The notes beneath the pieces are model-generated. The model was not told where the DNA came from. It searched no databases and worked only from the letters and a program-made list of their open reading frames with translations. DNA of 64,000 bases from Hyphochytrium catenoides (taxonomy: Eukaryota > Protista > Hyphochytriomycota): positions 1 to 64,000 of the forward strand of contig FLMG01001546.1 of assembly GCA_900088475.1 (NCBI GenBank). The letters are read 5' to 3'. Positions 40,632 through 54,830 of the stretch are shown piece by piece. The position numbers were made by a program, and so were the translations under genes. How positions within the stretch are numbered: position 1 is the stretch's first letter; the number at the start of each line of letters is the position of its first letter.

Positions 40632-43600
40632 CTATGACCAGGTGAGGTTCAGCTGGTAGCAGTCCTCGCTCTGGCCCTCTTCGTCATTGACAAATAAATA
40701 GACAGAGGCTGACACTTTTTCCCTTCTCAGAGGAAAAGAAAGCCGGATAAAGCCCTCTCCTCCTCCATGGAGCAAAAGAGTGTGGGTTTTCAACCTTACA
40801 AGAGACTCATCACTGGAGCTGAGATGGAAGGTTCGAAGGTTATCCCAACGGTTATGGTAGGCAATCCTCTGCACAGTGGCAAGCGTTCAGTGCTACAGAC
40901 TTGGCGTTATGAGAACGAGGAGGAAGAACCAAGAGAGACAGGAGAAGTACATGACAGACAGAGGGACAGAGGGAGAAGCGGAGAGACAGTTACACGGACA
41001 AAGGCGTGTAAACAGAAGAAAGAGGCAGCAAGATAGAGAGAAGCGTACCTTGCTATGCTCCTTTCCTCGATCTAGAATAAGATCAAACTTCTTGGTGACC
41101 TGTGGGGGGTAGGCGCTACTAGCGACTATCCATGAGCTCAGTAGGGTTCCAGCACCAGCGTCTGCCATGTCAAATCGGTGAACGAGAGACGACAGATAAC
41201 CGTGAAAGCAACAGAACGTGGGACCAAGACAATTAAGAGACTGAAAGGGACCTAAGTTACGGGAGTAGGAAGTGGAGGCTGAAGCAGCGTGAAAGGAACA
41301 TACAGCTTCAAGACGAAAGGTCATATTCCCTCACCTGTGGCATGCACTAGGAAGGTGCGATACCCCGCTGTCAAGGGGCGGAATCGTAGCTCCACGAAGT
41401 TCAGCGAACTTGGGGCCATTCGCACCGGACCGCTAGGTCGCATCTGTAGGTTTAGACAAAAGTTAAATGAAATGAGCGGATTAAACACTCCCAATGATGG
41501 AGACGAAGGCAAAATATTGGCCAGAAGCAAAGTGCGAGGGGGAGCGAGAGCGTACGGTGTGGGCGGGACTTGCCGCAAAAGCTTCTTACCTGTGCTTCTC
41601 CTGGAAGAGATGAGTAGAAAGAGACGTATTGAGGGGCTCCGTCACAATCAAATGCCAGCTCGGAGCTTGAAGTCTCTCCGACCACTGCGTTGATGTGGAT
41701 CCTGGGAAGAGTTAGGGGCTTAGATGTTAGCCTTTTCTCCCAGCGAAGTCCCACATCCCTTTGCGATACCTTCGCCTTTTGCAAACGTTCCTCTTACTCC
41801 CGCATACCCACAGTTGCTTCCCAAAGACAACACTCCCCTCCACTCCACCTTCTCACGCAATGTACAGCTATTGTTATTCTTACCTGTTACTAACGTGCAA
41901 TGTCACCCTCCAGATGGCGCAGAGCCTGGCATGAAAATGATCTTCGTAGAGGAGGACATAGAAGCTCTCCTCAATCGGAGTGCGTGGGGTCCGAGTCTTA
42001 ATCTCTAAGGTGTTTGGTCCGTGATCCAGAGGAACATCGCCAGCCTTTCACAGAAATAACAGCGTCAGTAGCTCACAGAAGAGCTTTGAAGTCAAAGCAT
42101 AAAACGGGGTAGGTTCCCCCGCAGGCTGTTAATAGAGAGGTGCGAGAAATGACACTTGGAGTCGTTGCGCGGAGCTCATTATAGTTCCAAGAGATAATAT
42201 CTAGTTCAAAGACAAAGCCTTTCCTTACCTTGGCTCCATAGACTTCTACAAGCACCTCCTTTTCGCTGCAAAAGGCATACTTCGGCCTCCCACGGCAAGC
42301 AGATGATGAGGATGGAGTATCAAGAGCAATCTGTTCCTTGACAATCTCACCAGGCCCTTTGTGTAAATGTAGGTGCCGGTCCACCACGAAAGGTTGGGGA
42401 TGGACTCGGATTTTGAATATGGCTATGTTATGCCCATGTATCGCACTTTGGAGGACGATTGGACAGACCCTCTCGTCTTTTTCTCTTTCCTCCGCACTAT
42501 GACGCATGGACATGAACACAAAGGGAACCCAAAGCTCTCCGTTTCCCTCCAGAAGTAGCTCACATTTGTCATCAATCATTTCTCTCTCCAAAGGCTGCAG
42601 CCCTGCCGACCCGAAGGCTGGCCGAACATTTGACCTAAAGTACGTCCACTCCTCAACATTTCTTATGAGATGGAGCTCAGGATCGCCGAAGCTTAGTGAG
42701 AATCGATGCTCCGCAGGGAAAGGATTGCGTATGTGAAGCTCGAAGTACTCTGGCTTGCCAAAAGTAGGAAAGAGCTGAAATTCCGTGGTAAGGCTCTGAG
42801 TTAAAAGACTGGTAACGAGCTTCGCCTTACTCTTCTCTCTGTGCCACTTCAACCTTTCCATGTCCCTTTCTTTTGAGCCAACACGCTGGAACTCGGGCAC
42901 TGACGAGGGTGAAGGGTGGACAGCAGAGTAGATGCTGCTTCTAGCTTCACTTGTATTTGACTGCTTCCTCTTCTCCATGGCTCTCTTCAGCGCGGCTACT
43001 CGAGTCCGCTGTCGACGCAGAAGGGACGAGGAATATCGAGAGTTGGAGTGGGAGGGTGATGCTTCGATGGTGTCTGTCAGTGTGAAGCCCAGTTTGAAGA
43101 GCAGCTGTGAGAAATCTGAAAGAAATATGGAACCTGTCCCTGAAGGGTCATAGGAGGCCAAGACAGAGGAGACATCAAATCCTTTCATAGAAAGCTTTGA
43201 TATTTGCTTCCTCAGTTTCCGCTCTATCCTAAGACCCATATCTTTCACACCTCTCTGGTCACTTAAGACTTCCTCAATAGCTTTGGGGAGATCTGACAAT
43301 CGCCCAAAGCCAGAGAATTCTTTGTCAACAAGCTCAAATAAGAGCAAACTCTCACTGTTGCTGAGATGGAACAGCCGCTTGCAGTGCCTTGTGAATTCGG
43401 CTAGAGAAACTTTATCGGTCCCGAGGTTCTGCCTTCCTAGTTGCATCTCGTCCATTTTCGTGCGTACATCTCTCAATAAACCTCTCCTCCTATCTTCAAG
43501 CTCTTTCTCAATGTGCGGGTTGAACAAGTCTCGAAAAAGTAGGAAACCATCACCGTCTGTGTCCAACTGGGCAAAGATATAGGTCAACTGGGGGTAAATA

Positions 43601-46600
43601 TCCTCGTTCCAGTCAGGCAGACTCCTCATAAAGTCTTGGAAACCTTCAAAACTCATTCTGCCTCCTGCTCCTTGGGTAAAGTGAGAGAAGAGCTCTTGCA
43701 ACTCTAACCCTGCGGCCCCCTGAAGCAGAGACGTGAAGTCCCTTGCTGAAGCCGCTGGTCCGTCCACTGTGCTCGAGTGTGAGAAGAAGGCTTCCACACT
43801 CTTCTCGGCCAAACGGTTCTTGCCGCCACCACCGAGCTCTTTGAACAGGCAAGAAGCGATCTCCTTCGATGCTTTCTCCAATTCACCTCCCAGGCTCTGA
43901 AGGGCCAACTCGAGATGGTGTTGCGTGAGGGTACCTCCGTCTCTTGCTGCAAGCTCCAGAACTAGTGCTTTGAAACTAATGCCAAGGGCGTCTGCTACTT
44001 CCACTACCTCCTTTATTGTCCAAGAGCGTGAATCATTCCCTTTCATATGTACGATGCGCTCATCGTTACTCTGGACGAAGGCAACAAAGGCTTCAAAGGA
44101 AGAAGTCAGGCTCCCTGATCCTTCCGTTACCTTTCCTGGCGCAATTACACCTTCCTTAAAGGCAGAAAGCGCTTCGTCCGCCTTGAGATCCAAGTCTATA
44201 CCCGTATCAGACAGTAGCGAGACCAGCTTGTCATATTCCTTGGGATTGCCACTCTTTAGGAGAGAAAATAGGTCCTTCAGATCTGCACCTTTCGCCTGAG
44301 CGGCAAGTAAGGCTTCCTTGAGCTGCAGGGCAGCCATAGAAGACCCTTTTTGCGTTTTTTCGCCACCCTTCACTGGAACTCCATTGTCAACAAACTGAAG
44401 AAACTCTGCAAAATGTATCTTTCCGTTACCGTCGACGTCAATCTGACCGAAGATCATCTGGATCTCCTCGTCCCCAAGCTCAAATGAAGCTGATCCTAGT
44501 CCCGCCAAAAACTGAGCAAACTCTGCGCGGTCCACGGCAGCGCTTCCATCCTTGTCAAAGTGAGAGAAGAGATCCTTGATGTTTACTCCCTTTTCCTGCG
44601 CGGTTCGCAGTATGCTCTGCAGGTTCTCGGTGCTAGTACGGCTGCATTTTGCTTCCTCCTTATTCCCATGATTTCCCTTACTCAGTGCCGCCTTCGTTGT
44701 GTACCCGTTGCTTGATTCTACCTTTGCGGCTTTCCCAAGCGGTTGGCTGTTTATGAAGGTTTTGAATTCTTCATAGCAAATCTTTCCATTGTTGTCGTCA
44801 TCAATCTCCCTAAATAGTGCGTTCATGTCTTCCTCGGTGAGAGTGTAATCTGGCCCTAGTCCCCGCAAGACCTGACTGAACTCCTTGATGTCAAGCCACC
44901 CACCTCCATTTAGGTCAAAATGAGCGAACAAGTCCTTTAGCGATACCCCTTTCGCTTCTGCTGACTTCATCAGCTGGCGGACTTGATCACTGACCGTTGT
45001 ACGGCGCCAACTGGATTTCTCACTCTTTGTATCCTCAGATTTAGCAGATGTCGTCTTCCGTTGAGAAGCACTTCCATTAACGAAATGGAGGAACTCTTCA
45101 TAAGTTACCTTTCCGCTCCTGTCCCTATCGATCTGGGAGAATAGTTTTGATGCCTCATCACCGCTGAGCTTCAGAGTAGGTCCCAGCCCATGAAGCACTT
45201 GCTCAAACTCTGCCGCATCTACTGAACCATCCCCATCGTTATCAAAGTGGGCAAATAAGTCTTTGACATTCAAGCCCTTCTCCATTGCGCCACTTAGGAG
45301 CCTTTGCAGCGACTCCATCGATAAGGTGCTCTTCGATACTGATTCTATTGACATGGGCTTGTCACCCTCAAGGAAGAGCATGAACTCCTGGCAGGTGATC
45401 TTGCCACTGTTGTCACGGTCAATCTGCCGAAAAAGCATTGCTACCTCTTCTTGCTCAAGGCTGAAGTCAACCCCAAGACCTAAAAGGACTTGACCGAACT
45501 CTTTGACATCCACAGAGCCATTTCTGTCTTTATCAGAGTGATCAAAGAGCTCTTTCACATTCAATCCTTTCTCAGAAGCTGCCTTCAGCAGCTTGCGTAG
45601 ATCCGTAGAACGCATATTTGTCGTTATTGCCGACGCCGACTGGCCTCTTTTGCCATTGGCCTCAGGTCCGCTTCTCACTCCTAGTTGCACGAACTGCTGA
45701 AATTCTTCGTATGTAATCTTTCCGTTGCCATCAGTATCTATATTCTTGTAGATAACCTCAACCTGTTCATCTGCCAGCTTAAAGTCCGGTCCCAGTCCAG
45801 AGAGCACTTGCTTGAACTCCTTTAGATCCACAGAGCCACCTCCATCCTTGTCAAAGTGTGTGAAGAGATTCTTTACGCTTATTCCCTTCTCTTCCGCAGA
45901 TTTTAGTACATTTCGAAGTTGATGTAAGGGCGCCACATCTGAAGATTTCTCCCCTCCCATTTCTCGAGAGGGACTGGGGGTACTCTCAATAAAGGCCTTG
46001 AACTCGTCGTAGGTAATCCTTCCACTCTTATCGCGATCTAATTCTTGAAAGATATCTCTGATTACGGCTTTGCCCAGCTTGAAATCTTGACCCAGCCCTG
46101 CAACCACTTTTTCGAACTCAACAAAGTCAACAAAGCCGCCATGGTCATGATCAAAGTGGCGGAAGAGATCCTCTAAGTGGACCCCTTTATCCGAAGCAGT
46201 CTTGATCACTTGACGTAGCTGGTCTGAAGCTGATTCCGCTTTCTGCTGTGCCGGGGGCCCGTTACAGTTTCCATCTACGAAGCTCCTAAACTCTCCGTAG
46301 CTTATTCGTCCGTTTTTGTCAATGTCAATCGTACAGAATATACCTCTAACATCCTCAACTGTAAGTGAGAACTCTGATCCCAAGCCGTGTAAAACCAAGC
46401 CAAACTCCTCAAAGTCCACTGAACCGCCGCCATTCTTATCAAAGTACTTGAATAGATCCTCGACACTGATACCTTTTTGCCCTGCTTGTTTAAGTGTGTC
46501 TCGCAGTCGAGCTAAGGCAGAATGACCAGACGCTCCAGTCTTGTCCAATCCTGCAATAGAACCTCCTTGCATATAGTCGCGGAACTCTTCATAGCAGATA

Positions 46601-49600
46601 GTTCCATCCCCATCTCTATCTATCCTCCGGAAAATATTAGCCACCGCTTCCTCCTTGAGGGTGAAATCCGCACCCAATGCAGCAAGAACCTGGGCGAATT
46701 CCTTCAGATCCACGGACCCGCCGCCATCTTTGTCAAAGTGAGTAAAGAGATCTCTTACGCTGACGCCCTTTTCCTCACAGGTCAGTAGGATGCTCTTGAG
46801 TTGCTCTATCGGGTTTGGCGCCGTTGCTGCACTTTGCGAACGGCTAGTTCCACCATTCACGAAAGCCTTGAACTCGTCATAGCTGACTTTACCACTGTTA
46901 TCTTCATCGATTTGTCGAAAGATCTTCATCATCTCTTCTCTTTGCAGCTGAAAGTCTACGCCCAGGCCATCCAGCACCTGGCCAAACTCAGTACAGTCTA
47001 CCGATCCAACCCCATCCTTATCAAAGTGCCTGAAGAGATCCTTTAAGCTGACTCCTTTTGTCTCGCAGGCTTTTAAAATCCGTTGTACTTGATCTGCCGT
47101 ACTTGGTTCTGCATTGTCTTCCCGTTGACTATGCGTTGCTCCGCCTTGTATAAAAGCCTTAAGTTCAGCGAAGGATATCTTTCCGCTATTGTCATCATCA
47201 ATGGACTTAAAAATCTCTTCTGCTTCATTCTTTCCTAATTGGAGGCCAGGCCCCAGCCCGTCCAAAACTTGGGCGAACTCAGTTAGGTCCACTGTACCAC
47301 CGCCATCTCGGTCAAAGTGACTGAAGAGTTCTTTTACACTTGCGCCTCTCTCTTCGCAGGTTTTAAGGATCTTCCTCAGCTTGTCCGCGGATTTCTCCTT
47401 ACCCTGGGCCTTCCTGTGACTATGCGTGGCTCCAATTTCTACAAAGTCGTTGAACTCTGCGTAGCTTATTCTACCACTGTGGTCATCATCAATCTCTTTG
47501 AAGAGAGCAGATACCTTCTCCGGGGAGAGCGTGAACTCCGGCCCTAGGCCGGCCAATACTTCAGCAAACTCCTTGACATCGACAAAGCCGCCACCGTCCC
47601 CATCAAAATGGTGGAAAAGATCCTTTAAATCAACTCCCTTGTTCTGGCAGACCTCAAGTACTTTTCGAAGCTGATCGGCCGCAGATACCTGATCCTCCAC
47701 CGCTTTGCTCTGTTCCAGAAAGGACTTGAACTCTTGAAAGGTGATACGTCCACTGCGATCTTTGTCTATATGACGGAAGATACGGTGTCTGTCCATGACG
47801 GTCGGACGAAATTGGTCCGAAAGAGCACCCAAGACCTGTTCGAACTCTTTCTCGTCTACGGATCCGCTTCCGTCTTTGTCAAAGTGAAAGAAAAGCTTCT
47901 CCATGGTAACACCCTTGCTTGCAGCCGTACGAAGGATATCGCGTAAAGCTTGAAGATTAGGGTCGTTCTCCGCGTCCTCCTTATTGTTCTTGGACCGGGG
48001 ATAGAGTTCCGCCAGAAGTCGCCGATACTGAACCACGTTTTCTCTGTTTAGCGGCGAGTAGCTCTCGAGAAGTAAATCTAGGTCTGCGATAGAGATTTCA
48101 CAACTAGAGCCTAGGTTCTGAAAGCACTCGAGGGCGCACTTCATGGAGACGGAGCCCACCTTCTCTTTATCGTAGGAAGCAAAGAGATCTAGGATAGTCG
48201 CATACTTAATCCCGCGTTTCTTGAGGACATTCCTAAGTCTCTGTATAAGACTCTGCTTCCGCTCGCCGCGGGATCCAGCCTCCTTTGCCAATCTGACCAG
48301 TTCCCTATAGTCAACCCTATGTTCTCCTAGTCGGTGCTTCTGAAAGTACTGATAGATTTCATCTGTGGATATGCAGAGCGCCTCAATGGGTGCCTCTTCT
48401 ATTCTTTCTTTTTCTTCAGGAGTATTTGTCTGCAGTTGAGTGATGGGCTTCGCACGAGCTCGTGTGCGAAAGATGGCACCTTTGCTTTCCCTTTCCTTTC
48501 CTTCGCTTTGAAGCCTCCATTGCAACGCTAGTCTGGCAAAAGTATCCCCTTCATCCGGTTGGCCTATCATAGTTATGGGTGTATTCCTCCCAGCCTCCGT
48601 TTCCTTGAAACTTCGAACTCCCAAGTTGGATGCTAGGAGAAGGACCTTTCCGACAGCCTTGGTGGCTGGGAAGGAGTAGGATGAGGACTCGAACACGTCA
48701 AATTCTCCTCCAAACTTGACGGATTTCTGTCCCTGTCTCATTAGCCGCCGTAAAGGCAGTCTGCATAGACCGAGGTGAAAGAGGCTATCTCCGTCCCATA
48801 CGTCTATCTGCAGAGATTTGTAGTACAGATATTCAGCGAAAGCTATGGACTCGTTGGTGCCGTGGGCGGACGTGTCAATGGTAAACTTCACAGCCAGCCC
48901 AGCGGGTTCTTGACTTTGCTCCTTTCGAACTAAAATCTCTGCCGGACCAAACTGACTGCTACCATCAGCCGGGAATTCTGCAAAGGGTGCAGCTAGATTA
49001 AGGTCCTTGTCATGGGAAGGAAGACAAGAAAGCGTCTCCGTCCTTGTCGGAACATAGTTGTAGAATTGGAAAGTGAAGAATAGTCTTTTAGGACTGGGTG
49101 CATTCTTCTCCAAGCTACGCCTGAACCCAGCCAGATGCACCGTGACCTCATGTATGGCGCAAGAATCTTGAGCCTCCAGCTCAACGCTAAGTGGCGAGTA
49201 CTGAACAGTAACATCACTTGCAGAGGAATGCGTGCTAGCTATTCCTCCACTGACGGACTCGGCGACGCCTAACCGGTTCAGAGTTGTCATGGCCGCCCTG
49301 GAGAACTCCCGGTAGGGCATCGTGAGATCTCTGACAGGTTGTTGGCTTCCGGACGGCTTCAACTCCACCGGTGCCCTTTGATTGGGCCCAACATTAGTCT
49401 CCATGCTACGAGGGGACAACTCCGGCTTCTTAGGTTGTGTTGTCTTCTCGTCGTCCTTAGGGCGCTTCTTGTTTGCCGTAGTTGTGGCTAGCTGCGCGGG
49501 AACTTGCTGCTCTTCTTCGACCTCGATGTCTTCCCACTGCAGGAGTCAATACATGTTAGGCGCAGTCAGCCGATTCAGTGTAGGCCTTGAAGGGGAGTGG

Positions 49601-52600
49601 ACACGATATAGGGTCAAAGTAACAGAACCTATCAGAAAGGGAGACCTGCTAGGCAAGGGGCTTAAAAATGAAGAAGTTACTATCCAAAGAATAACCGGCA
49701 CCCAGATGGGAAAGTCCTTCACCATAGGGGAGAAAGTCGAACCTTCAGTTGACACTCGATAGTTATCTTGTGATGGCCAGATGTAGGAGGGCGTCCGGGG
49801 ATAGAGAAGATTGGCGCTTCGGTAAATTTCCTCATCAGCCCGATATCAAACATCTTTAGCTTTGTCAGAGTGTCTGGTGATACTGCTACCTCTTTGCCAT
49901 CATGCAAGACTGCACCGCCACATGCGACCACAGCGAGGGCTGGCTCAGTGTCCTTTGGGGTCTTGGTTTTCAAGATTATACCTTCTATCTTGGTCTCCGA
50001 AATGAGAATGGTGTACTGCACCATCCCTACGAGGACAAAATTGGGATCTGGCACGCAGCCCCTGAGCTTCAGAGCTCCGGAACTGAGTAGCGTATCACTG
50101 ACAGAGCTCTTAAGTTTGAGCGGCAGCGTCAGCGCCCTCGTCACCCACCTCCTACCGTTGTGCAGCCCGATCTTTAGAACTCTGTGGGAAATGTCTGCAG
50201 CAACCTGAGTCGCATCATTTTGGGCTCTAGCATAAATGATATTCTCAATCAGCGCTTCTTCAAACTCCACTCTATGGCGAATTGTTACTGAGACAGATTC
50301 CACGTCCGTCGTGGTCCGAGGTAAGAACTCAAAGGCCAGAGTAGGTAAGAGGCGTCGGTGCTGCTGCTGCTGAAGACAAGGAATCTTTCTTTTTCCTACC
50401 CCGAGGACATTAGGCCTTAGTCCTGGGATGGCGTCAGCCTTCGTAAACAATTCGTAATCATTCAAAAGGGGAGCCAGTCGGGCATACTCTGGTACTCGGC
50501 ATCTGCTGATGCGTAGAACGCAGCCCTGGACATCAGGAAAGTCCTTCGCTTCGCTTGTAAGACCGAAGAGGGCTCGGGGACTGCCCTGGAGAACTTGAAT
50601 CATATCTAGAGTCTCATGGCCAGTCTGCCATTGGTGGCTCAGATCAGGAAGACTACCATCACAAAAGATGGGAAACATTGCCCATCCAAAACCGCTTTCA
50701 GATCGAGTGATACCACTAGAATCTTTGACACCGGATATGAGTTCTATAACAGCATATACTGATTTCTTTCTCTCTCCAGCGCTCAGGAAAAACAGGTAGT
50801 CATCTATCAGTATAGTCTTCTGAGCTTTGGACCGACAAAGTCCGGGCAGATCCTTCTGGGTGGAAAGGAAGACTTTGGACTGGCGATCGTACAGAAATAT
50901 TCTCAGCCTATATGTTGAATCTAGTAGTGCCCCACGGGAACAGATGGAGACGAAGAGCAAGGACCCAAGGTTAGCTTACGAACATTCGAAAGAAGCTAAC
51001 AAACCACTACCGTCCCTCATAACTGCTCTAAGGACCAAAGATTTGCACAACAAGAAGAAGAACAATTAATTGACGAGTTGTCTCACCACCGTCGGCGAAA
51101 GCCTTAGCGTCTGGCCACCGTGTGACATCGACGAGATGGAAGCCGTAAGCAGTTGTTTGAGATGTTGATCGAGCAGATTGAGCATCCATCCCTTCAGCGG
51201 CACAAGGCACAATCTGCCTACGCACCAGCCCTAAGAACTTCTTGACGTAAAGGTCCTGCGTCTCTTGAGGGGTGCGTGGAACCACAACTGGCTCTCCCTT
51301 ATCCTGGTTATCAGATTCAGGCTCTTTCTTGTCGTCGTCGTTGTCCAGTTCTAAGTTGTCATCTTCTTCCTCTTGACTTTCTGTTTCCGAAGACGCATCT
51401 CGCTCGCCAGGCATAAGCTCTCCATGCTTCGATTGCTTTTTACCACCACTGGTGCTACTGTTACCTAGTATGCCTGTTTCACCATGTTGGATAGGAGGAG
51501 CAGACTGCGGGGGTGTTGATCTTGTGACGCGCTCCGGCCGAGCGCATTCGCCTTCCTCGTCTCCAGGTTTTGTCATCATCTTTTTGTTCGATTCCCTGTT
51601 CTCTTCAGACTTAACTGGTTCTTTGCTCTGTTTATCGTTCGAGCTCCCGGTGAAGGCCTGTTTGGTAGGTTTGTTTGCCTTATCTCTCTTCTGCTGGCTA
51701 TCAATCTCTTCAACTGTCTTCTCTTTTGCTATCTTATCTTCTTTGTCCTGCTTATCAATCGCCTGGGTGGCAAGTGTCTTGTCTACCTTAACATTGCCTT
51801 GATCGACAGTTCCTTCCTCCTTAGTTGGTCTAGATTTGGAGTGTTTGGCATCCTGAGTACTCTTGGCTGTCTCGGCTGTCAAGGCGATGGAAGGAGCGGC
51901 GCCTTTAACAGGCTGGAAAGTTTCAACTCCACGGTTACCTCCTTCAGACAAGCTCCCTTTAGCAGCAGGTTGACCCTCGTCTCCATTCGTTTCAAAACGC
52001 CCTTCTGCGATCCATGAGCCATCCGTCTCTTTATTGGACATCCTACCGCTATCTGCTCTACTATCTGATTCTTCGTCATTGGAAGCAGGAAGATCCGCTG
52101 AGAATCCTCTATCCTTACTCCCGCCGCCGTCGTTCTTCTCCCAGCCATCTTTCGCTAGGGCGGCTTTGCGCACCTCGGTGTCGGGCTGCCGTGTAGAAGG
52201 CTTCGGTTGATAGTTGTTGGATCTCTTGTCCCTTGTGGCACTGGCAAGGTCGGGAGCTGTTGAGAGAAGATTGTCTTCCTGCCGGACACTTTCAATTTCT
52301 TTTATCGATAAAGCATGGATTCTGGTGATCTTACCTTCTCGTCTCTGACTGTGGGTTCCTCTTTGTCGTTAGGAGTTTGAGGAACGTCAGTATCTGCGGA
52401 AACAGTGAATGAGGTGGCGCTAGTTGGCTCTTCCTGCTTTAGGGTAGAACCCGACGGCATAGAGGTGGAAGCCTTGCCTAGAACATTTACTTGTGCTATG
52501 CGACAGCTTAGCTCGTCACCTATGGGAGGCTTTACTAGCAGACAAAGTACCTTCCTCTCCCTCCTTTGCCACGATTAATGTGCTAGTAGAGGCACCATCA

Positions 52601-54830
52601 ACCTTGGGCGGAATCCCCGAAGTGTATCCACCTTTCTTTTGAGGTTCCTGAGTTTCTTCAGTGCTGTCCGGCTTTGATTCATCCCTGCTGTTGCTAGTTT
52701 GCGCAATTTTTGAATCCTCCTTGGTGTTAGAGGTTAGAGGATTCACCTTGGGGCCACTACCCTTATTGCTCTCTAAGGTCACCAGGAGAAGCACGGTCTC
52801 AGAGAGTCAAAGTTAGCCTAACTGTATAATAAGATTACCTCTGGCATCTAAGGTAGCTTTGCTTTCATCGGCATCTAAGGTAGCTTTGCTTTCATCGGTT
52901 GCTGCGACGTTACCCTTCGACCCTGGACACATGAACGCTTTTAGTTCTTGCTCTTAGCTAAATGATGCTTTTTATTTACCTTCTCTGTGAGATGACCTTC
53001 GCCGCTTGCTTTCTTCCCGAGCTTCTTTCAGGCTTTTGGGTCGGTCTGCCACTGTCATAGCTTGATCAGATCCTTCTAGTGACAACATTTAGGAGCGATA
53101 ATAACTCAGCCACCTGGCGGATGGGTCTTTCCATCTAACCCTCCTTTGCTGAGCCCGGAAGAGTCGATAAATTCAACTGCATTCCCTTTCGGCTCTTTGT
53201 TTTCCTCCTCTTCTTGATCTATTCATCAAACGAGTGTACAATGCCCATGAGTTAGGCGCGGAGCGATAGAGTATAAATATAAACGCACCGGGGAAGTTCC
53301 TTTTGTACATTTGCTTGGTTATCCCCTCCTTCGCCTCATGGATGGTCTTTTTCTGCTTTCTTTGCTTGTCAAGGTCCTCTAAGTATGCAGAGCGCAAAGG
53401 TGAGGGTTATTATTTAGCCGTTTGTTTCGATATTGGTTACCTCCATTGTCTGACTGAGCACTCTGAGGTAAAATCTGGGGTGTGTCTCCTGCTGTCTTCT
53501 TACTCTCTTGACTCTCTTCTTTATCGGTGCCTCCGAGCGCACTCCCGGTTGACACTTCCGCAATTTCAGAGCCTTTCTCCTCCTGCTTTGCGCCCTCACC
53601 TGACTTCGAAGTGGCCCCGGGATTTTTGGGTTTTGGGTCGTCAATAGATTTCGATTGCTGCTGACTATCCAGAGTATCTGACTCTTCATGTTGACTATAT
53701 GAACCAACTGCAGGGGAAGATGTCTCAACCTTGAAGTTCTCGGTGACTGTTCTATCTTCTTGTTTCAGTCCTTCTCGGCTATCGAGCGTCTTTGATTCCT
53801 CTATACGGCTAGCCAGAGAGGGAGATGCCTCGGCCGTGAAGCTCTCAGCGACTTGTTCTTGTTCTGCTTTCTGTCGCTCTGGGCTCTCATAGGTCTTCGA
53901 CTCTTCTTTCCTGTCCGCTAACGAAAGGACGGGGGATATTGCGTCAGCCTTGGAGTCGTCAATAAAAGACGCTCTTGCGTCAGGCTTTGACTCTTGACTG
54001 AATGGGTCTCTTGCGTCAGCCTTGGCGTCTTCACTGAATGTCCTTCGTTCTGCTGTCGGCCGTTCCGGGCCATCAAGAGGTCTTAACTCTTCTTTTCGGT
54101 AAGCGAAAGCAGCGCCAGGAGACAATGCCTCCGCCTTGGGAGCCTCAGTGGTAAGTCTCTCTTCTGTCGGTCCTTTTAGCATTTCAGGGAGAGAACGACT
54201 GAAGCTACGAAAGTAGTTACCTGATTTTACGGATCTCTCTACCACTACTGAAGCGACCCCCCCTAGGTCCTTGTCATCTGATGAGATGCCGGTCGAGCAC
54301 GAAAAATATTTAGACAGAAGGCAAGTAATGTGTTCTTTTTGGTTGCAACCTTTTCCCTCTACATTCCTCTTCTTGACTGGAGATTCAGCGTGCGTTGGGG
54401 ACTGTTCATCATCTTTTGCGCTGACCATCTGTCTTGATACTGCATTTTCTTTGCCTGTACGGAGCTGCTTAGGAAGCCGTGGGTGAGAAGGAATACGACA
54501 CAAACATCTCTACCTTCAGCAATGGGCTGCAGAAAGTCCTGTTGCGGTTGTGTGGTGCTAGGGTGTGGTTCATGCACTTTTTCCTGGTCTGAAGGAGAGG
54601 TAGGTGGTGGCAACTTGGCTGCTGTGGATGATGGAGCAGTATAATGCTAATCAGCTCTTACCTTCTTTCCCAGGCCTTGGCTTCGTCTCTTTACCAAGCT
54701 CTTCGTGCTGCTTGGCTTGTTTGGCAACGATAGATGGTTCGTCCTTTCCCGACGCAGCCGCAGGTTTGCCCCGGTTCTGCGCTGCTACTCTGTCCTTCAA
54801 GGACTGCCGCCGCTCAGGCTTCTTCTCCAT
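40632..54830 (-). CDS. NPHP4: Nephrocystin-4 (ciliary transition-zone protein) with a long N-terminal disordered extension and an internal EF-hand array, ~19 exons, ~4,100 aa
   Basis: NPHP4 hallmarks: FFTFQFYNY, LQIDVWDGDSLFHLG..LRRLMRQG, LLTQSLTTEFQLFPTFGKPEYFELHIRNPF, FYVLLYED..AIWRV and the terminal exon KRIAYHNRW..RTFHLSS..YLFVNDEEGQSEDCYQL*. The N-terminal C2-like exon is 50920-49743. The upstream small exons splice in frame, but their inclusion in this gene is less certain. Confidence 0.9.
44390..47955 (-). repeat. Coding tandem array of 12 ~95-110-aa paired EF-hand modules inside NPHP4
   Basis: Consensus LRxxLxxAxxKGVxxKDLFxHFDKDGGGSVDxxEFxQVLxGLGxxFxLxxEExxxIFxxIDxDxSGKIxYxEFxxFV, counted 12 times in ORF 42073..49419. 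Confidence 0.95.
52843..52896 (-). repeat. Perfect 27-bp in-frame tandem duplication (DESKATLDA x2) in an NPHP4 5' exon
   Basis: ggcatctaaggtagctttgctttcatc x2 is directly visible. Frame preservation supports coding status. Confidence 0.9.

Follow-up and report, generated by a model that had tools for sequence, protein, structure and literature searches.

The NPHP4 locus

The DNA analysed here (the window) is a stretch of 64,000 nucleotides from Hyphochytrium catenoides (Hyphochytriomycota; assembly GCA_900088475.1, contig FLMG01001546.1, positions 1 to 64,000 of the forward strand). Its minus strand carries a gene predicted to encode a giant nephrocystin-4 (NPHP4), in which a long array of paired EF-hand modules is inserted between the central C2 domain and the first immunoglobulin (Ig)-like domain. 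NPHP4 is a scaffold of the NPHP1-4-8 module at the ciliary transition zone. The core of the gene is a stop-free open reading frame (ORF) of 2,448 codons (42073..49419, minus strand), mostly inside one exon of 7,308 nt; ORF residue numbers for the C2 region and the array refer to this frame. The recognisable parts, from 5′ to 3′, are:

51087..51258, minus strand: first recognisable N-terminal NPHP4 exon, 3′ end, with donor GACGGTG/GTGAGA (last exon base 51087)
49743..50920, minus strand: exon of the NPHP4 N-terminal region (NPHP4N-C2 of Zhang & Aravind), with canonical GT-AG introns on both sides
42229..49536, minus strand: main exon, 7,308 nt, in uninterrupted frame, with the central C2, the EF-hand array and the first Ig-like domain
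48520..49332, minus strand: NPHP4 central C2 (NPHP4C-C2), with FTFQFY at 49060-49077 and IDVWDGDSL at 48781-48807
48058..48249, minus strand: decayed module upstream of the array, ORF residues 391-454 (module hidden Markov model (HMM) 15.1 bits, independent E 5e-6)
44386..47958, minus strand: 12 well-conserved modules, each with a leader helix and two EF-hands (24 loops in all), ORF residues 488-1678
43054..44334, minus strand: four decayed modules downstream, ORF residues 1696-1781, 1798-1879, 1891-1971 and 2065-2122 (module HMM 7-23 bits)
42229..42882, minus strand: first NPHP4 Ig-like (ASH/MSP-type) domain, from BLASTP and tblastn matches
40635..42044, minus strand: remaining Ig-like domains to the C-terminus in five short exons, from colinear tblastn blocks and donors

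The borders of the main exon were placed by splice-site inference (acceptor CTGCAG/TGG at 49536, donor AAG/GTAAGG at 42229). Upstream, the intron that follows the donor at 51087 is 166 nt long, and the next exon is reached in continuous frame. The five downstream exons lie at approximately 42044-41884, 41701-41590, 41443-41335, ~41251-41049 and 40868-40635, with donors CAG/GTAAGA, CAG/GTAAGA, CAG/GTGAGG and AAG/GTACGC, some of their acceptors being uncertain. The joined eight-exon model is in frame and stop-free over 3,464 codons counted from the upstream ORF start, and the predicted NPHP4 protein has about 3,100-3,400 residues, according to the choice of start codon.

Identity of the gene

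Pairwise and profile searches, together with the precomputed Pfam lists of relatives, show by homology that the gene is the organism's nephrocystin-4 orthologue, as the original prediction had proposed. The C2 region (ORF residues 40-340) matches animal nephrocystin-4 with E values of 3e-12 to 1e-8; in an alignment of 13 sequences FTFQFY is invariant and DVWDxxSL near-invariant (its D, W, D, S and L are invariant). The N-terminal exon at 49743-50920 matches residues 139-377 of a nephrocystin-4-like protein of the echinoderm Amphiura (BLASTP E 7e-9) and is recovered by tblastn with oomycete and Mallomonas orthologues (E 5e-13 to 7e-17). The first Ig-like domain matches residues 960-1192 of Pongo nephrocystin-4 (BLASTP E 1e-18) and gives tblastn matches from all relatives, whilst the five blocks downstream are colinear in tblastn with the C-terminal 620 residues of animal and stramenopile NPHP4, to the last residues. 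The Pfam-A copy that we scanned is without the NPHP4 families (PF26186, PF26187, PF26189, PF26015 and others), and even animal nephrocystin-4 obtained no matches with it; the blank NPHP4 result of that scan is therefore uninformative on family membership.

Animal nephrocystin-4 (~1,400-1,600 residues) is colinear with the window gene from the N-terminal region through the central C2, where both FTFQFY and IDVWDGDSL occur, to the Ig-like domains at the C-terminus. It differs in that no EF-hand loop was found in the animal nephrocystin-4 sequences, again as predicted, and in that ~150 residues connect C2 and Ig-like domains, compared with ~1,900 here. The comparison shows that the array, an insertion of ~1,900 residues, takes in the predicted protein the place of the ~150-residue linker that connects the central C2 of the animal protein with its first Ig-like domain.

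Two further open frames lie 5′ of the recognisable exons. At 51088-52173 (minus strand), the frame of the first NPHP4 exon stays open through ~300 codons of acidic and lysine-rich low-complexity sequence; this stretch is an N-terminal extension or a 5′ untranslated region, with candidate methionines at ORF residues 45, 199, 200, 254 and 329. A frame of 374 codons at 53379-54503 (minus strand), of low complexity, rich in Ser, Glu, Lys and Ala and with no Pfam match, could be a gene of its own or one more NPHP4 exon upstream.

Modules and loops of the EF-hand array

A Pfam scan of the open frame returned EF-hand_7 with an E value of 1.1e-158 in 12 paired stretches, and the single EF-hand models in 22-23 stretches (23 for EF-hand_1). 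An HMM built from the 12 modules scores these strong copies at 112-129 bits and finds five weak copies at 7-23 bits, giving 17 modules in total, which together span 43054-48249 of the window. These results agree closely with the original prediction, which had placed the array at 43090-48260 between the IDVWDGDSL C2 and the Ig-like domains of a single 7.3-kb exon (the inferred main exon runs from 49536 to 42229) and had counted about 18 modules, of which about six were degenerate. The two loops quoted there, DKDGSGSVDEKE and DKDRSGRITFQE, were located at ORF residues 514 and 552, and the 12 conserved modules with 24 loops carrying Asp at position 1 and Glu at position 12 were recovered in full.

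The first loops (12 residues) of the strong modules begin at ORF residues 514, 606, 703, 800, 896, 994, 1090, 1190, 1296, 1393, 1502 and 1622, and in all 12 modules the second loop follows 38-39 residues after the first. The module period is 92-120 residues, with linkers of 13-41 residues that are rich in Ser, Ala and Gly, and the module consensus is xxxQLRxxLKxAxEKGVSVKDLFxHFDKDGGGSVDxKEFxQVLxGLGxDFxLxxExxxxIFxxIDxDxSGKIxYxEFxxFV. The array as a whole is acidic (net charge -57, pI 5.0). Methionine is scarce in the modules (1.3%), and the Phe, Leu and Ile positions of both helices are kept. The last of the decayed modules (residues 2065-2122) lies in the stretch before the Ig-like domains, where KLRKAA..RGV...LL.KY is conserved in a stramenopile alignment of ten species.

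Asp1 and Glu12 are present in 24/24 loops, and 21 of the 24 pass the strict PROSITE pattern PS00018; the loops at residues 800, 1622 and 1661 miss it by one position each. In the second loops (EF2), D1, D3, S/N/D5, G6, I/V8 and E12 are found in 12/12, with Cys or His at position 9 in three, and in the first loops (EF1) D1, D/N3, D9 and E12 are found in 12/12. Judged by these ligand patterns, the modules are likely to bind Ca2+, and the two Ca2+ sites of a module pair probably differ in affinity.

Between 44000 and 48000 the plus strand has a strongly negative GC skew (-0.17) and a negative AT skew. Both arise because repeated coding sequence rich in Asp, Glu, Gly and Lys lies on the minus strand, and they are no replication signal.

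Authenticity of the array

The module copies are mutually 46% identical in protein and 54% identical in DNA, and Tandem Repeats Finder (TRF) reported no tandem repeat across the array. Three DNA runs, from two samples, gave contigs that follow the window colinearly over 44300-49900, with no indels and no joints, which speaks against the mis-assembly that the original prediction had named as a ground for refutation; the three runs are possibly those behind the assembly, and as independent support they are weak. A recent tandem repeat or a collapsed assembly was rejected on the same grounds, namely the blank TRF result, the DNA identity of 54%, and colinear contigs free of indels and joints.

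The contigs differ from the window at ~117 single bases in these 5.6 kb (~2%). The 40 differences listed comprise 18 synonymous and 22 non-synonymous ones, a synonymous share above the ~1:3 expected in the absence of constraint. Differences at the level of ~2% point to two haplotypes or strains.

Predicted structure and fold relatives of the modules

Modules 4-5 were modelled together with AlphaFold (AF2), using an alignment of the 11 consecutive module pairs. The model has a mean predicted local distance difference test score (pLDDT) of 78 and a predicted template modelling score (pTM) of 0.44, and shows five helices per module: a leader helix of 14 residues and two helix-loop-helix hands, with a short strand in each loop. 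The linker of 11 residues between the modules has pLDDT values below 50. These predicted features are in keeping with the leader helix, paired hands and flexible linkers that had been read from the sequence at the outset, the linker appearing as disordered. Since the linker pLDDT is below 50 and the pTM is 0.44, the model sets no inter-module orientation; it portrays the modules as what would be independent beads on a string, with disordered linkers between them.

In a Foldseek search of the model, calmodulin was the top match (28-30% identity, probability 1.00) and centrin appeared at rank 32. The best multi-module matches in a sequence search of the PDB were radial spoke protein 7 (RSP7), EFCAB6 and CCDC81B (E 1e-24 to 1e-28), which rank high mainly through having several modules, and which differ from the protein described here in being without NPHP4 domains. 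EFCAB6 and RSP7 are axonemal proteins and are not known as transition-zone proteins. A PDB profile search for the origin of the module (calcyphosin-like or EFCAB6-like) was dominated by calmodulin, and a protein-atlas look-up returned generic EF-hand and C2 clusters only, below a score of 0.9. Each module shares the calmodulin-lobe fold with calmodulin and centrin; those are free four-hand proteins, whereas the leader helix is particular to the module type found here. A system of the centrin/spasmin type was considered as a counterpart and does not fit, as the hands are covalently chained in a scaffold of ~3,100-3,400 residues and calmodulin stands above centrin whether sequences or folds are searched.

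Stramenopile relatives and origin of the architecture

The same order of C2, array and Ig-like domains occurs in at least 13 named stramenopile species and in dozens of metagenomic proteins. The top three matches of the first search, Globisporangium ultimum, Mallomonas annulata and a JGI metagenome protein, are all giant proteins with both NPHP4-specific and EF-hand Pfam families. Further relatives that carry the array are those of four Phytophthora species, Aphanomyces invadans, A. euteiches, A. stellatus, Saprolegnia parasitica, Chrysophaeum taylorii and Tribonema minus. The array-bearing relatives combine NPHP4-specific with EF-hand Pfam families and are labelled only as 'hypothetical' or 'EF-hand domain-containing'. 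Representative NPHP4 orthologues and module counts are:

Globisporangium ultimum: K3W8N0, 3,147 residues
Aphanomyces invadans: XP_008861649.1, 3,607 residues
Saprolegnia parasitica: XP_012200236.1, 3,470 residues
Chrysophaeum taylorii: KAJ8607018.1
Phytophthora and Globisporangium: 7-8 modules
Saprolegnia and Aphanomyces: 14-17 modules
Ochrophytes: 6-10 modules
Hyphochytrium catenoides (window): 12 strong and 5 weak modules

These orthologues share with the window gene the N-terminal region, the DVWD-containing C2, the array of leader helices and EF-hand pairs, the conserved decayed module and the Ig-like domains, all in the same order; they differ in overall sequence (25-38% identity) and in having 6-17 modules against 12 strong and 5 weak ones here. 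The Aphanomyces orthologues contain 25-26 strict EF-hand loops.

A profile of the C2 alignment, built from animals and stramenopiles, matched 1,200 proteins at E<=0.001, of which the best ~150, mostly metagenomic, were inspected. Of the top 152 representatives, ~38 carry two or more strict loops beyond the C2, and every protein longer than 1,900 residues has modules. In a tree of the C2 domain, a single branch (support 93) sets apart 42/42 EF-bearing proteins, and of the 43 full-length proteins that are without EF modules only 2 lie on their side of it. The C2 of the window lies on this EF-bearing stramenopile side of NPHP4, on a long branch (1.66) that places it only approximately. Within these top ~150 matches, the tree fits a single origin of EF-bearing NPHP4. 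The array was not found in the animal NPHP4 or streptophyte Klebsormidium sequences examined, and the final protein search had no brown-alga, diatom or raphidophyte NPHP4 among its matches. The distribution of the orthologues shows that the insertion was already there in the last ancestor shared by oomycetes and ochrophyte algae, if not earlier.

An EF-hand-bearing NPHP4 has been described before. Zhang and Aravind (2012; Cell Cycle 11:3861, PMC3495828) reported EF-hand domains in the NPHP4 of some eukaryotes, and in NPHP1 also, from a set of species that took in Phytophthora, Albugo and Ectocarpus, and suggested from the EF-hands of several NPHP1-4-8 complex proteins that the complex responds to Ca2+. 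Theirs is the same observation of domain architecture with the same Ca2+ inference, differing from the present analysis in that it consists of one sentence and a figure panel, with no module count, array evolution or experiment. Our search of the literature naming both NPHP4 and EF-hand found no characterisation of the array, and that on NPHP4 in Phytophthora found nothing beyond the 2012 paper. The novelty entertained in the original prediction does not survive the 2012 report and the at least 13 named stramenopile species that carry the array, and of the prior work that it had allowed for, an earlier notice proved to exist and a characterisation did not. The architecture is real, was noted before and is uncharacterised; it is not new.

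Amplification of the array

In trees of single modules, the 12 strong modules of the window form one clade (96/99; 99 in a second tree), modules 3-6 of Mallomonas form a clade of their own, and a third, weakly supported group unites the distal modules of Saprolegnia and Aphanomyces, whereas modules 1-7 of the oomycetes pair one-to-one across species. These groupings mean that the ancestor already had several modules and that the central modules were amplified independently in different lineages. In Hyphochytrium catenoides the module trees show one module to have been amplified, in the predicted protein, to 12, a lineage-specific expansion that sets this gene apart from the oomycete orthologues with their one-to-one modules 1-7. 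By the divergence of its copies (46% identity, ligand residues kept) this expansion is an old one. At least three amplifications of the array took place independently of one another.

Proposed function of the array

The reading that we favour, with some confidence, is that the modules bind Ca2+ and would turn the NPHP module into a multivalent scaffold that responds to Ca2+; the role as a sensor is the weak part of this proposal. The modules would bind Ca2+ through second loops that are fully canonical and first loops in which the invariant Asp9 could compensate for the frequent Gly5. A rise of Ca2+ at the flagellar base would then open up to 24 EF-hands per NPHP4 molecule, and the compaction of the array and/or its binding of transition-zone partners would change in response. 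The most plausible read-out would be Ca2+-controlled remodelling of the gate or shedding of the flagellum, because related zoospores shed their flagella at a Ca2+-sensitive encystment. In Phytophthora, a Ca2+ ionophore immobilises zoospores and triggers encystment, and the flagella are shed on encysting (bioRxiv 10.64898/2026.05.14.725065). In Paramecium, depletion of NPHP4, RPGRIP1L or CEP290 blocks Ca2+-induced deciliation (Gogendeau et al. 2020, PMC7093003).

Several points weigh against this proposal. Position 5 of the first loop is Gly in 7/12 modules and Val in 1/12, and the affinity may be low. Paramecium RPGRIP1L from which the EF-hands have been removed keeps the deciliation signal (Gogendeau et al. 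2020, PMC7093003), so that lineage-specific EF-hands in the transition zone need not control shedding; RPGRIP1L belongs to the same transition-zone module as NPHP4 and has likewise gained lineage-specific EF-hands, although it is a different protein and has few of them, at the C-terminus. The variation in module number between lineages, from 6 to 17, also matches neutral repeat turnover. Finally, a search for RNA runs of the organism listed none, a search over all kinds of run gave only the three DNA runs and three very small ones that were empty, and transcription of the NPHP4 gene is a prediction from DNA.

The alternative that survives best is a passive one, in which the array either holds the membrane-facing C2 domains and the Ig-like domains apart as a long flexible tether or spacer, or serves at the flagellar base as a local Ca2+ store and high-capacity buffer, with EF-hand pairs permanently loaded with Ca2+ or Mg2+ and no switch. 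We regard this as unlikely, though it is to be taken seriously: disordered linkers between modules that are predicted to be independent (pTM 0.44), the free variation in module number (6-17), the acidity of the array (net charge -57, pI 5.0), the five modules that have decayed with the reading frame kept, and the dispensability of the Paramecium RPGRIP1L EF-hands for the deciliation signal would all suit it. However, a spacer would have no need of the ligands that are kept in 24/24 loops at 46% identity, and in distant orthologues; the conserved Phe, Leu and Ile positions of both helices are likewise retained, scarce as methionine is.

A second alternative, which we consider improbable, is a Ca2+-driven contractile spring resembling centrin or spasmin and/or a part of the stramenopile transitional helix. 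A transitional helix or equivalent coil is reported for all of the named lineages with the array, namely oomycetes, synurophytes, pelagophytes and xanthophytes; centrin is also among the fold matches (rank 32), albeit below calmodulin. The correlation with the helix rests on helix-bearing lineages, as no brown-alga, diatom or raphidophyte NPHP4 is among the matches. The known EF-hand contractile systems consist of small free centrin or spasmin proteins on partners with Sfi1-type repeats, and not of covalent chains. The number of modules differs more than two-fold between close relatives, from 8 in Phytophthora to 14-17 in Saprolegnia and Aphanomyces, which ill fits a regular structure, and variable module number together with disordered linkers speaks against a fixed geometry such as a helix of defined pitch.

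That the array lies outside the mature NPHP4, through mis-assembly, fusion of gene models or a region that is spliced out, is very improbable: no RNA run was listed and the DNA runs may be the assembly's own, but C2, array and Ig-like domain share one stop-free 7.3-kb frame, the DNA contigs have neither joints nor indels, a DNA identity of 54% makes repeat collapse or expansion implausible, and the same domain order recurs in dozens of metagenomic proteins as well as in 13 or more named species.

The wider NPHP module and significance

EF-hand arrays were also observed on a partner of NPHP4. Three RPGRIP1L-like stramenopile proteins (P0220, P0224 and P0226; PF11618 C2-C2_1 and PF00168 C2) carry long arrays; P0220, a protein of 2,994 residues from Triparma retinervis annotated as 'Calmodulin', has 13 matches to the module HMM, and arrays are present on RPGRIP1L in metagenomic relatives as well. 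The arrays on RPGRIP1L-like proteins indicate that the NPHP4 partner gained the same kind of decoration. An extended proposal, which we rate as rather unlikely, is that the stramenopile NPHP1-4-8 module is wholly operated by Ca2+, with the NPHP4 array as the trigger or amplifier of flagellum release or gate closure when zoospores encyst. If it is true, NPHP4, RPGRIP1L and NPHP1 would all bear EF-hands, and each ninefold Y-link region would hold dozens of Ca2+ sites. This idea at the level of the system is the 2012 proposal made concrete and is not new.

NPHP4 is central to the ciliary gate, and its gene is one of the ciliopathy genes. Flagella are shed, on a Ca2+ trigger, just distal to the transition zone. 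The 'EF-hand domain-containing' and 'hypothetical' proteins of Phytophthora, Aphanomyces, Saprolegnia, Globisporangium, Tribonema and Chrysophaeum can be re-annotated as NPHP4 orthologues, with up to 34 EF-hands built into the NPHP4 scaffold of oomycete pathogens of plants and fish and of several algal classes, together a large group of economic importance. Since the zoospores of these organisms lose their flagella in a Ca2+-sensitive step before infection, the array is a genetically tractable candidate for a link between Ca2+ and the transition zone.

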